A DNA stretch of 64,000 nucleotides from Pseudomonas aeruginosa PAO1 (lineage in GTDB: Bacteria > Pseudomonadota > Gammaproteobacteria > Pseudomonadales > Pseudomonadaceae): NCBI RefSeq assembly GCF_000006765.1, contig NC_002516.2; one strand, 5' to 3'. Numbering within the stretch: the first letter of the stretch is position 1; every line of letters starts with the position of its first letter. The position numbers and the translations under genes are program-made. Below are positions 2,053 to 60,718 of this stretch, in pieces. Below the pieces are notes generated by a model that saw only the letters and a list, made by a program, of their open reading frames with translations, did no database searches and was not told the DNA's origin.

Positions 2053-3347
2053 GTACCCTGATTCGCATTGCGCTGTTCGCCCTGGCCCTGATGGCAGGTG
2101 CTGCGCAGGCTGCCGACCCGCTGGTGATCTCCAGCGGTAACGACCGTGCCATTCCCATCGCCGTGGTGCCGTTCGGCTTCCAGGGGGGCAACGTGTTGCC
2201 GGAAGACATGTCCAATATCATCGGCAACGACCTGCGCAACTCCGGCTACTTCGAGCCGCTGCCCCGGCAGAACATGATCAGCCAGCCGGCGCAGGCCAGC
2301 GAAGTGATCTTCCGTGACTGGAAGGCAGTTGGCGTCAACTACGTGATGGTCGGCAACATCGTGCCTGCCGGCGGACGCCTGCAGGTGCAGTACGCATTGT
2401 TCGATGTCGGCACCGAGCAGCAGGTCCTGACCGGCAGCGTGACCGGCAGCACCGATCAGCTCCGCGACATGTCGCACTACATCGCCGACCAGTCGTTCGA
2501 GAAGCTCACCGGTATCAAGGGCGCGTTCTCCACCAAGATGCTCTATGTCACCGCCGAGCGTTTCTCGGTCGACAACACCCGCTACACCTTGCAGCGCTCC
2601 GACTACGACGGCGCCCGCCCGGTGACCCTGCTGCAGTCGCGCGAGCCCATCGTGTCGCCGCGCTTCTCGCCCGATGGCCGCCGTATCGCCTATGTCTCCT
2701 TCGAACAGAAGCGCCCGCGTATCTTCATCCAGTACGTCGATACTGGCCGTCGTGAGCAGATCACCAATTTCGAGGGCCTGAATGGCGCTCCGGCATTCTC
2801 CCCTGACGGCAACCGCCTGGCCTTCGTCCTGTCGCGCGACGGCAACCCGGAAATCTACGTCATGGACCTTGGCAGCCGCGCCCTGCGCCGCCTGACCAAC
2901 AACCTGGCGATCGATACCGAACCCTTCTGGGGCAAGGACGGCTCTACCCTGTACTTCACCTCGGACCGTGGCGGCAAGCCGCAGATCTACAAAATGAACG
3001 TGAACAGCGGTGCCGTGGACCGGGTAACCTTCATCGGCAACTACAACGCCAACCCGAAACTCTCGGCCGACGAGAAGACCCTGGTAATGGTCCACCGCCA
3101 GCAGGGCTACACCAACTTCCAGATCGCCGCCCAGGACCTCCAGCGCGGCAATCTGCGGGTGCTGTCGAACACCACTCTGGACGATTCGCCCACTGTTGCG
3201 CCCAATGGCACCATGCTAATCTACGCCACCCGCCAGCAGGACCGGGGCGTGCTGATGCTCGTATCCATCAACGGACGCGTACGGATACCTCTCCCTACCG
3301 CTCAGGGCGATGTGCGCGAGCCTTCCTGGTCCCCTTACCTGAACTGA
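2049..3347 (+). CDS. tolB: TolB periplasmic beta-propeller
   Basis: Signal peptide and repeated PD40 motifs ([16 protein letters not shown]). Confidence 0.97.
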
Positions 3348-56946: not shown

Positions 56947-58197
56947 ATGAAAATTCTTCCCGTTCCGATGCTGGCCGCGGGGCTGGCGTTGCTGCCGTCG
57001 TTCGCCCAGGCGGAGTTTTTTGCCGACGGCAAGGCCGGCCTCGAACTGCGCAATTTCTATTTCAATCGCGACTATCGCCAGCCCGGCGCCAGCCAGTCCT
57101 ATTCGGAGGAGTGGGCGCAGGGTTTCCTGTTGCGCTACGAGTCCGGCTACACCGAGGGGCTCTTCGGCCTGGGTGTCGATGCGCTGGGCCTGCTGGGTGT
57201 CAGGCTGGACTCCTCGCCAGAGCGATCCGGTAGCGGTCTGTTGCCGTATTCGACGAGCGACCGGCGCGCCGCCCACGACTATTCCAGCCTGGGCCTGACC
57301 GCCAAGCTACGGGTCTCGCACAGTACGCTGAAGATCGGCACCCTGATGCCCAGGCTGCCGGTGGTGCAGTTCAACGACACGCGCCTGCACCCGCAAACCT
57401 TCCAGGGCGGACTGCTGGAAGTGAACGAGATCGACGGGCTGGCGCTGCAGTTCGGCCAGCTGCGCCAGGTCAAGCAGCGCGACTCGACCAACGCCGAAGA
57501 CCTCGGCATCACCCGCGGCAACAAGCGCAACGTACTGGCGGGCCGGCACCCCGGCAGCGACCGCTTCGACTTCGCCGGCGGTACCTACCGCTGGAGCGAG
57601 CGCCTGAGCAGCAGCTACCACTACGCCAACCTGGAGGATTTCTACCGTCAGCATCATCTCGGCGTGCAGCACCTCTTGCCGCTCGCCGATGACCAGTCGC
57701 TGAAGTCCGACATCCGCTGGGCGCGTTCCACCGACGAGGGCGGCAGCCGCGTCAACAATCGCGCGCTGAATGCGCTGTTCACCTATCGCCTGGGCGGCCA
57801 CGCCTTCGGCCTCGGCTACCAGCGCATGTCCGGCGACAGCGGCTTCGCCTACCTGGCCGGGACCGATCCGTATCTGGTCAACTTCGTGCAGATCGGCGAT
57901 TTCGCCAACAAGGACGAGCGCTCCTGGCAGTTGCGCTACGACTACGACTTCGCCGCCATCGGCCTGCCCGGCCTGACATTCATGAGCCGCTACCTGCGTG
58001 GCGAACACATCGACCTTCTGGACGGCGGTGGGCGCGGCAAGGAATGGGAGCGGGACACCGATATCGCCTACCTGGTGCAATCGGGGCCGTTGAAGAACCT
58101 GGGGATCAAGTTGCGCAACGGCACCTTCCGCAGTGATTTCGGCAACGACATCGACGAGACCCGGCTGATCGTCAGCTACGCGTTGCCGCTGTGGTGA
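56947..58197 (+). CDS. opdD: OprD/Occ-family porin (OpdD)
   Basis: Signal peptide, LELRNFYFNRDY, EWAQGF, C-terminal ETRLIVSYALPLW. Confidence 0.88.
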   Translation: MKILPVPMLAAGLALLPSFAQAEFFADGKAGLELRNFYFNRDYRQPGASQSYSEEWAQGFLLRYESGYTEGLFGLGVDALGLLGVRLDSSPERSGSGLLPYSTSDRRAAHDYSSLGLTAKLRVSHSTLKIGTLMPRLPVVQFNDTRLHPQTFQGGLLEVNEIDGLALQFGQLRQVKQRDSTNAEDLGITRGNKRNVLAGRHPGSDRFDFAGGTYRWSERLSSSYHYANLEDFYRQHHLGVQHLLPLADDQSLKSDIRWARSTDEGGSRVNNRALNALFTYRLGGHAFGLGYQRMSGDSGFAYLAGTDPYLVNFVQIGDFANKDERSWQLRYDYDFAAIGLPGLTFMSRYLRGEHIDLLDGGGRGKEWERDTDIAYLVQSGPLKNLGIKLRNGTFRSDFGNDIDETRLIVSYALPLW

Positions 58198-58230
58198 AGC
58201 GGACTTGAGTTTCCCGATGTTTCCGCGCCA

Positions 58231-58261
58231 TTGACCCTGTAGTGGCTACAGCCTTTTCACT
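58231..58261 (+). promoter_or_regulatory. MerR-type (CadR/PbrR-like) promoter-operator
   Basis: TTGACC, then a 19-bp spacer containing the dyad CTGTAG-tgg-CTACAG, then TTCACT. Confidence 0.75.
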
Positions 58262-58295
58262 GGAAGCCGTCAGATCCAGACGAGAGGGTTGTGCC

Positions 58296-58571
58296 ATGGG
58301 GTTCTTCGAACGGTTGTTGATGGGTGGGCGTCATCATGGACAGGGCGGTGGTCATCACGGCGGCGGTCATCACCGCGGTCAGGGCGGCTATCCGCCGGCG
58401 CCAGTCGCGGTGGGAATGGCCTGTCGCGCCTGCCGCACCGCGAATGCGGCGACGGCACGATTCTGCCAGGGCTGCGGCGGCGCCCTGGCGCCGCTGCGCT
58501 GTATCGCCTGCAGCGCCGATCTCGCGGCGGGCGCGAAGTTCTGCGGCGCCTGCGGTGCGCCGCAGCAGTAG
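58296..58571 (+). CDS. 91-aa His/Gly-rich double zinc-ribbon protein
   Basis: GAGAGG RBS; three HH pairs and four CxxC motifs. Confidence 0.85.
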   Translation: MGFFERLLMGGRHHGQGGGHHGGGHHRGQGGYPPAPVAVGMACRACRTANAATARFCQGCGGALAPLRCIACSADLAAGAKFCGACGAPQQ

Positions 58572-58573
58572 CC

Positions 58574-59050
58574 TCAGTCGACGGCGAGGATTTCCACCGC
58601 AAGGGGGGAGTCCTTCGCCCCGGTCTCGTCGCCCGGGTGCCTGCCGATCAGGCTCTGGCCCAGTGGCGAGCGAGGCGTGATGACCAACACCTCGCGACCT
58701 TCGCAATCGATCTTCAGCCCGGCCGCCTCGGGGCCGAGGAACACTGTTCGCCGGCTGCCGTCGGCGTTCAGCAGGGTGACCAGCGCGGTGAGCTGGATGC
58801 CCTGTTCCTCGTCGAAATCGCGCAGCACCAGGTTGCGGTACAGGCCCAGCGCCTGGCGGATCTCCTCGACCCGGCGCGACTGCCCGGCGGCCAGGTAGGC
58901 CGCTTCCAGGCCGAGGGTGTCGTACTTGTTCTCGGCGACGTTCTCTTCGTGGGTTGCCGTCTCATGGGCGGTCTGCGCGGCGCGGACGGCGACTTCCAGG
59001 TCCGCGGCGAGCTTTTCCGTGATCAGGCGCAACAGCTTTTTCTTGTCCAT
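58574..59050 (-). CDS. GreA/GreB-family protein
   Basis: Coiled coil ending AENKYDTLGLEA; C-terminal VITPRSPLGQSLIG. Confidence 0.85.
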   Translation of the reverse strand: MDKKKLLRLITEKLAADLEVAVRAAQTAHETATHEENVAENKYDTLGLEAAYLAAGQSRRVEEIRQALGLYRNLVLRDFDEEQGIQLTALVTLLNADGSRRTVFLGPEAAGLKIDCEGREVLVITPRSPLGQSLIGRHPGDETGAKDSPLAVEILAVD

Positions 59051-59224
59051 GTCGGGTAGGCGGGGGCTGGCCGGCGAAGGCGTGCATGGTACGGGAAAGA
59101 CGGCGGATCGCGACAGCTCGGAGCCAGTATGAAAACTCGGAATGACGTGGCGAATAAAGGTCGTTTGTCGCTACCGGGCAAACCGACTAAAACGAGCGGA
59201 AACGAACAGCCAGGAGAACCTCAC

Positions 59225-60718
59225 ATGATCGACGGATTGCTGCGCAGTCTCGGCCTCGACCCCAATGCCTTTCGCGATGGCGAGCTTGCCGTGCATACCC
59301 CCATCGACGGCAGTCGCCTGGCTGCGGTGCGACTGGAGGGGCGCGCCGCCGTTGCCGCCAAGGTCGAGCGCGCCGAACAGGCGTTCCGCGCCTGGCGCCA
59401 GGTGCCGGCGCCGCGCCGTGGTGAACTGGTGCGGCTGTTCGGCGAGGAATTGCGTCGGCACAAGGCCGAACTCGGCGAACTGGTGTCCTGGGAGGCGGGC
59501 AAGATCACCCAGGAAGGCCTCGGCGAAGTCCAGGAAATGATCGATATCTGCGACTTCGCGGTGGGCCTCTCGCGCCAGTTGTACGGTCTTACCATCGCAT
59601 CCGAGCGTCCCGGCCACCACATGCGCGAGACCTGGCACCCGCTGGGCGTGGTAGGCGTGATCAGCGCGTTCAACTTCCCAGTCGCGGTGTGGTCGTGGAA
59701 TACCGCGCTGGCGCTGGTCTGCGGTAATTCCGTGGTCTGGAAGCCTTCGGAGAAGACCCCCCTCACCGCACTGGCCTGCCAGGCACTGTTCGAGCGTGCC
59801 GCGCGGGCCTTCGGCGGCGATGCGCCGGCGCACCTGAGCCAATTGCTGATCGGCGACCGCGAGGCCGGCGAAGCGCTGGTGGACGCCCGTCGCGTCGCCC
59901 TGGTCAGCGCCACCGGCAGCACTCGCATGGGGCGCGAAGTGGCGCCGCGGGTGGCGGCGCGTTTCGCTCGCTGCATCCTCGAACTGGGCGGCAACAACGC
60001 GATGATCCTGGCGCCAAGCGCCGACCTCGACCTGGCGGTGCGCGGCATCCTGTTCGGCGCGGTGGGCACCGCCGGGCAGCGCTGCACCACCTTGCGCCGG
60101 TTGATTGCCCATGAGTCGGTGAAGGACGAGATAGTCGAGCGCCTCAAGGCAGCCTATTCCAGGGTCCGTATCGGTCATCCGCTGGAGGGCAACCTGGTCG
60201 GGCCGCTGATCGACGAACGCAGCTACCTGGCCATGCAGGACGCCCTGGCGCGAGCCCGCGAGCAGGGGGGGCGGGTGTTCGGCGGCGAGCGGCAATTGCA
60301 GGAGCGCTATCCGGATGCCTACTACGTGTCGCCGGCCATCGTCGAGATGCCGGGACAGACCGAAGTGGTGCGCACGGAGACCTTCGCACCGATCCTGTAC
60401 GTGGTCGGCTACCGCGATTTCGACGAGGCCCTGCGCCTGAACAACGAGGTTCCCCAGGGACTGTCGTCGTGCATCTTCACCACCGACCTGCGCGAGGCGG
60501 AACTGTTCCAGGGCGCGGCGGGCAGTGACTGCGGGATCGCCAACGTCAACATCGGCACCAGCGGGGCGGAAATCGGCGGGGCGTTCGGCGGCGAGAAAGA
60601 GACCGGCGGCGGTCGCGAGTCCGGCTCGGACGCCTGGAAGGCCTACATGCGACGGCAGACCAACACCGTCAACTATTCCCGCGAGCTGCCGCTGGCACAG
60701 GGCATCACCTTCGATTGA
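59225..60718 (+). CDS. amaB: Delta1-piperideine-6-carboxylate / aminoadipate semialdehyde dehydrogenase
   Basis: ALDH7 motifs SAFNFP, LELGGN, GQRCTT; AGGAGA RBS favours ATG 59225 over 59129. Confidence 0.88.
   Translation: MIDGLLRSLGLDPNAFRDGELAVHTPIDGSRLAAVRLEGRAAVAAKVERAEQAFRAWRQVPAPRRGELVRLFGEELRRHKAELGELVSWEAGKITQEGLGEVQEMIDICDFAVGLSRQLYGLTIASERPGHHMRETWHPLGVVGVISAFNFPVAVWSWNTALALVCGNSVVWKPSEKTPLTALACQALFERAARAFGGDAPAHLSQLLIGDREAGEALVDARRVALVSATGSTRMGREVAPRVAARFARCILELGGNNAMILAPSADLDLAVRGILFGAVGTAGQRCTTLRRLIAHESVKDEIVERLKAAYSRVRIGHPLEGNLVGPLIDERSYLAMQDALARAREQGGRVFGGERQLQERYPDAYYVSPAIVEMPGQTEVVRTETFAPILYVVGYRDFDEALRLNNEVPQGLSSCIFTTDLREAELFQGAAGSDCGIANVNIGTSGAEIGGAFGGEKETGGGRESGSDAWKAYMRRQTNTVNYSRELPLAQGITFD

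Follow-up and report, generated by a model that had tools for sequence, protein, structure and literature searches.

The locus lies in the PA1023–PA1027 region of Pseudomonas aeruginosa, here analyzed as a window of 64 kb (the whole stretch of DNA examined; positions are window positions unless stated otherwise). Genes for an NMO-type reductase and an SDR lie upstream, followed by the porin gene opdD, and an aldehyde dehydrogenase gene lies beyond PA1026. Between opdD and the convergent PA1026 is a 91-codon gene, zrd, preceded on the + strand by a compact set of promoter elements:

56947–58197, + strand: opdD (PA1025), the upstream neighbor, encoding an OprD-family porin (Pfam OprD, E = 1.7e-159) and lying outside the zrd unit
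58231–58236, + strand: −35 hexamer TTGACC, by direct reading; invariant in P. paraeruginosa
58233–58255, strandless: CadR operator, the 23-mer GACCCTGTAGTGGCTACAGCCTT, identified by its identity with the published site gDNA2 of Barrows et al. 2025
58237–58255, + strand: 19-bp spacer CTGTAGTGGCTACAGCCTT, counted from direct reading
58237–58251: core dyad CTGTAG-N3-CTACAG, perfect, starting directly after TTGACC
58256–58261, + strand: −10 hexamer TTCACT, weak, of the class TnnA[AC]T, by direct reading
58265–58269, + strand: predicted transcription start, placed by the usual 6–8 nt after the −10 hexamer
58282–58288, + strand: Shine-Dalgarno sequence GAGAGGG, 7 nt 5' of the ATG, by direct reading; GAGAGG is kept in P. 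paraeruginosa
58296–58571, + strand: zrd coding sequence, 91 amino acids plus stop (ORF list, Pfam DZR, PGAP annotation in another strain, family alignment)
58296–58421, + strand: N-terminal part of Zrd, codons 1–42, with the motif MGFFERLLMGG followed by a His/Gly-rich linker
58422–58556, + strand: double zinc ribbon, codons 43–87 (Pfam DZR residues 43–87), with the spacing CxxC-10-CxxC-8-CxxC-10-CxxC
58574–59050, − strand: PA1026, convergent, GreA/GreB-like (ORF list; weak Pfam match to the GreA_GreB C-terminal model)

Read directly from 58230, the order is A-TTGACC-CTGTAGTGGCTACAGCCTT-TTCACT-GGAAGCCGTCAGATCCAGAC-GAGAGGG-TTGTGCC-ATG, with 34 nt between the −10 hexamer and ATG 58296. The −35, 19-bp spacer, perfect dyad, and weak −10 of the original prediction are therefore present upstream of this ATG as described. 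The −10 hexamer matches TATAAT at three of six positions and has no A at position 2. A sigma-70 scan with 16–18 bp spacing found no promoter at the zrd site, which is consistent with the over-long 19-bp spacer. Promoters of the MerR type (CadR/PbrR/ZntR group) have a 19–20 bp spacer and an in-spacer dyad abutting the −35; both are found here, together with a match to the cognate regulator's experimentally derived motif, since the 23-mer is letter for letter gDNA2. The left arm of the operator is full length, the outer 3–4 bp of its right arm are degenerate, and this outer right arm deviates from the 11-1-11 CadR consensus. With at most one mismatch allowed, the dyad CTGTAG-N3-CTACAG was the sole match in the 64-kb window (0.05 expected from shuffles), and any match at this tolerance appeared in 4 of 100 shuffles of the window. 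For the pattern TTGAC-N20-TnnAnT, two occurrences in the window compare with an expectation of 0.61, which makes this pattern weak evidence on its own.

Comparison with P. paraeruginosa revealed a 34-bp block, from TTGACC to TTCACTG, that is invariant between the two species while the surrounding noncoding sequence differs. In P. paraeruginosa opdD is absent and zrd directly follows the reductase gene. The alignment of the two species resumes a few bases past the opdD stop (window about 58198–58205; loci L007 and L019), indicating that opdD entered or left this place as one unit, immediately beside the zrd promoter. The core chromosomal genes PA1023–PA1028, including zrd, were also encountered in NZ_CP131792.1 (L109), an 846,886-bp P. 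aeruginosa record labeled as a plasmid; the record may represent misassigned chromosomal sequence or, alternatively, a chimeric replicon of very large size.

The same site was reached independently by Barrows et al. (Front Microbiol 2025;16:1608957; PMC12301328), who used REPSA to define the CadR motif and then searched PAO1 for it. Two PAO1 sites stood out, one at cadA (GACTCTGTAGTTGCTACAGGGTG) and the other termed gDNA2 (GACCCTGTAGTGGCTACAGCCTT), the latter at PAO1 1,112,233–1,112,255 in a 376-bp gap between the converging opdD (PA1025) and PA1026 (PMC12301328). These coordinates correspond to window positions 58233–58255, with an offset of exactly 1,054,000. In that work gDNA2 had a FIMO p of 7.4e-10, with only cadA ranking higher genome-wide; CadR bound it in EMSA with high affinity, comparable to the consensus and about equal to the cadA site; and ChIP-qPCR with His-tagged CadR showed its enrichment in vivo (PMC12301328). 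The open reading frame at gDNA2 was identified by blastx and named zrd, and RT-qPCR showed its induction by 100 μM Cd or Zn, which deletion of cadR abolished and plasmid-borne cadR restored (PMC12301328). Promoter-prediction software recognized the zrd promoter only once 1–3 nt had been deleted from the spacer in silico (PMC12301328). No experimental zrd transcription start was found in the literature, where the same paper gives a software estimate only (PMC12301328).

Collectively, these data confirm the observation and support its interpretation as a CadR target. The central proposal of a MerR-type, CadR-dependent promoter constituting a second CadR target is borne out by the published EMSA, ChIP-qPCR, and cadR deletion and complementation, as is metal induction, for which the reported inducers are Cd and Zn only (PMC12301328). 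Two statements about novelty have been overtaken: the target had been called apparently unrecognized and was in fact published in July 2025 (PMC12301328), and the gap had been called supposedly empty, but PGAP now annotates this 91-codon ORF in a different P. aeruginosa record. Because the site had already been found and tested by Barrows et al. 2025, nothing new is learned here about P. aeruginosa CadR. The case does illustrate that a true member of a regulon, missing from the reference PAO1 annotation, can be found by reading raw sequence.

Zrd scored 42.3 bits (E = 8.6e-11) against Pfam DZR (PF12773), for which the gathering cutoff is 27.3 bits, with the match covering residues 43–87 and four CxxC motifs. 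A Pfam scan at E ≤ 0.1 returned only zinc-ribbon families and one glycine-rich family, with no metallothionein model; searches of NCBIfam and of the sequences of solved structures gave generic zinc-ribbon matches only, and no curated NCBIfam model for the family was found. The PGAP entry in the other P. aeruginosa record, WP_010792073.1, is the same ORF with the same start and neighbors. No entry identical to the window's Zrd was present in the protein sequence collection searched. In an AF2 model, pLDDT was 66 overall and 72–80 in the ribbons, and the N-terminal half was disordered; nothing was gained over the published AlphaFold 3 model (PMC12301328). The first zinc knuckle in the window, at codon 45 (58428–58430), reads CRAC, while the other retrieved P. 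aeruginosa sequences and most of the family have CPxC. Frameshifted zrd alleles occur in some assemblies, including one P. paraeruginosa strain with an 8-bp deletion (L007, about 3080–3090), and several P. aeruginosa singleton proteins (P0002–P0011) shift frame on passing from the N-terminal part into the ribbons; such alleles may be genuine pseudogenes or reflect misassembly of a GC-rich repeat.

An initial word-index search gave almost only P. aeruginosa, as expected of a species-restricted gene, but a pattern-based scan and an HMM search overturned this impression. The pattern-based scan, with one genome per species, retrieved 214 Zrd relatives. The best 80 of these were mostly from Burkholderiales (Paraburkholderia, Herminiimonas, Collimonas, Variovorax, Comamonas, Acidovorax, and Rhodoferax) and also included Thiobacillus, Legionella, and Marinobacter, with Pseudomonas represented among them by P. 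paraeruginosa only. The exhaustive HMM search yielded 255 representative clusters (50% identity) at E ≤ 1e-10, and about 100 of the top 150 clusters were proteins of 80–120 amino acids matching end to end. In 75 of 81 homologous loci the encoded protein had 87–121 amino acids and comprised the N-terminal motif, a His/Gly-rich linker, and the double zinc ribbon. An alignment of 67 homologues revealed invariant M1, eight Cys, F56, G61, F82, and G87, and the CxxC-10-CxxC-8-CxxC-10-CxxC spacing was identical in 64 of them. Their N-termini conform to M[GS][FLI][FLW][ED][RK][LM][LF]G, and the linker before the first Cys contains a median of 5 His (range 3–9) and 31% Gly. These sequences define a coherent family, spread over Beta- and Gammaproteobacteria, of which Zrd is a member. 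Some larger proteins of 328–376 amino acids combine a C-terminal double or triple zinc ribbon with an unrelated globular domain (Kiritimatiellae MAGs, L025 and L062; Skermania, L053), and two of these begin MGLFDK or MGLFNK, resembling the Zrd N-terminal motif.

The family alignment bears on a caveat raised by Barrows et al., namely that a downstream zrd start, translating the zinc ribbons only, remains possible (PMC12301328). The N-terminus is conserved among homologues at only 40–55% identity, and length differences between them are in frame; at the sequence level, this conservation favors ATG 58296 over a downstream start and supports translation of the His-rich N-terminus. Codon bias gives no support in this part of the gene: GC3 is 0.64 in codons 1–42, compared with 0.86 in the ribbon part and 0.85–0.88 in neighboring genes, the low value being due to the Gly/His composition.

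The genomic context of the family was examined in the 81 loci by calling ORFs, clustering the neighbors, and naming the clusters by Pfam. At least one of P1B-ATPase, CzcA, CDF, MerR, or ArsR was encoded near zrd in 54 loci. A heavy-metal P1B-ATPase gene (E1-E2_ATPase + HMA) lay at most three genes from zrd in 34 loci, directly preceding it in 16 and directly following it in 11; other neighbors were CzcA-type RND pumps (26 loci), MgtC (11), CDF (9), MerR (7), and ArsR (4). Typical arrangements were merR< ATPase> zrd>, czcA> mgtC> zrd> czcD>, and, in Legionella, czcA> arsR> zrd>. Four of five divergent MerR genes at zrd loci scored above the curated cutoff of the CadR-PbrR model TIGR02047. In Legionella spp. 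(L036, L040, and L051), the zrd homologue lies downstream of czcA and begins 1 nt after an ArsR/SmtB-family gene, suggesting that the same small protein has been wired to another class of metal sensor. Homologues are also carried on Legionella, Klebsiella, and Enterobacter plasmids. On the Klebsiella quasipneumoniae IncFII plasmid NZ_AP026395.1 (L110, 5869–7718), the gene for a 98-aa zinc-ribbon homologue, together with those for a recombinase and a CDF transporter, is flanked by two copies of IS5075, which indicates that the family is also mobile on enterobacterial plasmids. An aldehyde dehydrogenase gene downstream in both Paraburkholderia and P. aeruginosa was considered as common synteny and dismissed as coincidence, as the two proteins are only 26% identical.

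Promoters of the same design accompany many of these genes. Scanning 458 kb of homologous loci for ACCCTGTAGNNNCTACAGGGT, with a threshold of at least 13 matches in 18 positions, gave 39 matches, nearly all directly preceded by TTG; the zrd site matches at 16 of 18 positions (scored on the identical site of locus L019). In 16 of the 81 loci, a promoter with a CadR/PbrR-like dyad was located 57–208 nt upstream of the zrd start, and in another 15 such a promoter preceded a P1B-ATPase gene with zrd next on the same strand. The 20 distinct promoters before zrd or ATPase-zrd all have the form TTGAC[CT]-19 bp-TnnA[AC]T, in which T1, A4, and T6 of the −10 are invariant; the Variovorax zrd promoters, for instance, have TCCACT. 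The TTCACT of P. aeruginosa, weak as it appears, thus falls within the normal range of −10 hexamers in this class. A further example is found on pMOL30 of Cupriavidus metallidurans CH34, the classic model plasmid for metal resistance, where a gene with a late-added locus tag, RMET_RS33240, encodes a 100-aa homologue (region NC_007971.2, 92152–92573; L108, 8753–9174). It is convergent to a P-type ATPase gene, presumed to be czcP, in the czc region, and is preceded by TTGACC-CTGTAGTCACTACAGACTA-TTTACT, whose core dyad is the same as that of P. aeruginosa zrd. A literature search for RMET_RS33240 found no functional study, only the label "zrb" in a figure legend of a C. metallidurans genome paper; a wider search, for the function of the Zrd family and for PA1026 or opdD in Zn transcriptomes, returned only Barrows 2025 and this "zrb" label.

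These data also bear on other ways of reading the locus. The functional output could be RNA, a metal-induced antisense transcript running into the convergent PA1026, with the Zrd protein not the functional product. The arrangement lends itself to this: the zrd stop codon (TAG, 58569–58571) and that of PA1026 (58574–58576, − strand) are 2 nt apart, and a terminator scan of the + strand across 58000–59300 found no terminator-like site downstream of zrd, so that metal-induced transcripts should run antisense through PA1026. Such read-through is likely, and CadR-dependent interference with PA1026 (GreA/GreB- or Rnk-like) is possible; the read-through could be a side effect, with the zrd ORF as the main product. 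That RNA is the sole functional output is nevertheless very unlikely, because distant taxa retain the encoded protein, including all eight Cys and the N-terminal motif, because its length changes preserve the reading frame, and because the ORF has a Shine-Dalgarno sequence. Homologues moreover occur in quite different contexts that lack a PA1026-like neighbor, and an Rfam search of 57800–59300 at E ≤ 1 gave no match, which led to rejection of a known RNA family.

The dyad, followed by CCTTTT, could alternatively be the intrinsic terminator of opdD and no operator at all, and a simple terminator scan does list CTGTAGTGGCTACAG plus CCTTTTCACT 40 nt past the opdD stop. The stem would have 6 pairs only, with a 3-nt loop and a T-run of 4; the RNA fold of 58195–58270 was no more stable than that of shuffles (z = +0.39), and the minimum free energy structure did not include the dyad hairpin. 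P. paraeruginosa keeps the promoter block unchanged with no opdD to terminate, the same dyad precedes zrd homologues in unrelated contexts, and CadR binding to the site is published (PMC12301328). On the strength of the unremarkable fold and of conservation without opdD, a terminator was rejected as very improbable indeed. A chance palindrome, or a site used by another of the several MerR-family proteins of P. aeruginosa, to which the departure of the outer right arm from the CadR consensus might point, is exceedingly unlikely given the expectation of 0.05 such dyads per window, the FIMO p of 7.4e-10, second only to cadA genome-wide (PMC12301328), and the EMSA, ChIP-qPCR, and cadR deletion and complementation results that all indicate CadR (PMC12301328).

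The site is best regarded as the CadR-controlled promoter and operator of zrd, which adds this gene to the CadR regulon of P. aeruginosa as its second member, and we assign this reading, together with the mechanism proposed here, a probability of roughly 0.93. In this mechanism, a CadR dimer would occupy the dyad inside the over-long 19-bp spacer. In the absence of metal, the spacer would keep the −35 and −10 out of phase and the promoter would be silent; Cd(II)- or Zn(II)-CadR would then underwind and kink the spacer, realigning the hexamers for sigma-70 RNA polymerase and permitting open-complex formation. The DNA-distortion step at zrd is inferred by analogy with MerR, PbrR, and cadA, and for CadR it was shown in vitro on cadA (PMC12301328), as it was for PpbrA through a shortened spacer (PMC3431237). 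Transcription would begin near 58265–58269 and produce a leader of about 30 nt with the Shine-Dalgarno sequence, and translation would proceed from ATG 58296. The predicted product is a 91-residue cytoplasmic protein with the N-terminal motif, a flexible His/Gly-rich linker, and two Cys4 zinc ribbons, which would presumably bind the inducing metals and may buffer them or pass them to efflux pumps.

Barrows et al. proposed a metallothionein-like sequestration role for Zrd (PMC12301328). The determinants that host the family, namely cadA/zntA-type P1B-ATPase operons, czcCBA-mgtC-czcD clusters, pMOL30, Legionella czcA-arsR clusters, and enterobacterial plasmids, raise a further possibility, which we advance tentatively and would put well short of even odds: Zrd may be the founding characterized member of a widespread unnamed family of Zn/Cd/Pb efflux accessory proteins, usually under CadR/PbrR control, that act as cytosolic metal-delivery or pump-docking factors for P1B-2 ATPases, as the equivalent of CopZ for Zn/Cd and not as a passive, metallothionein-like sink. 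An accessory or chaperone role is given this much weight because of the repeated adjacency to P1B-ATPase and czc genes, and a factor acting on the pump itself is suggested by the same adjacency, by the conserved, amphipathic-looking N-terminal motif, and by the His-rich linker. Both sequestration and a pump-accessory or chaperone role fit the data, the latter drawing on genomic association only. That zrd travels with Zn/Cd/Pb pumps and CadR/PbrR-type promoters makes the accessory role directly testable, and this family-wide association with efflux genes, like the pMOL30 promoter, offers a modest new lead to what Zrd does.

The closest known system is cadA (PA3690) with its regulator CadR (PA3689). 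Like zrd, the cadA promoter has a TTGAC −35, a 19-bp spacer, a CTGTAGT-N-GCTACAG core, and GAC[CT] as the left outer arm, and it shares with zrd the regulator, a comparable reported affinity, and the response to Cd and Zn. The core dyads agree at 14 of 15 positions, the −35 hexamers at 5 of 6, and the −10 hexamers, TTCACT in zrd and TGCAAT in cadA, at 4 of 6. The two promoters differ in the outer right arm, which is CCTT in zrd and GGGTG in cadA, giving palindromes of 11-1-8 and 11-1-11, respectively. Unlike that of cadA, the zrd promoter does not stand back to back with cadR, which is about 3 Mb distant, and drives a small soluble protein rather than a transporter. The exact PAO1 cadA 23-mer was found on 20 metagenome contigs, most of which read GC-TTGACT-[spacer]-TGCAAT between the start of a divergent gene, upstream, and the His/Cys-rich N-terminus of an ATPase, downstream. 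The cadA promoter quoted in the original prediction, TTGACT-CTGTAGTTGCTACAGGGTG-TGCAAT, thus agrees in its flanks with most of these contigs, but three have another −10.

More broadly, PpbrA/PbrR of pMOL30, PmerT/MerR, and PzntA/ZntR resemble zrd as activation promoters in which a dyad in an over-long spacer abuts the −35, and differ from it in responding to other metals through other regulators; the ZntR spacer is 20 bp. The 19-bp spacer is a hallmark of MerR-type promoters such as PpbrA, which consists of TTGACT, 19 bp, and TTAAAT and becomes constitutive when the spacer is cut to 18 bp (PMC3431237). Spacer shortening is experimental for PpbrA and PmerT and in silico for zrd (PMC12301328). 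At the protein level, Zrd is like the bacterial metallothioneins (SmtA/BmtA, and PmtA of Pseudomonas) in being small, Cys-rich, metal-induced, and cytoplasmic. It is unlike them in its DZR match, its two mononuclear Cys4 knuckle sites in place of a polynuclear cluster, and its His/Gly-rich linker, and both the Pfam scan and the Cys pattern place it outside the SmtA/BmtA type. By analogy, Zrd may be likened to CopZ, a small cytosolic metal-binding protein encoded beside P1B-ATPases and co-regulated with them under MerR-type CueR control, although CopZ adopts the ferredoxin-like HMA fold and carries one CxxC site, whereas Zrd has zinc ribbons.
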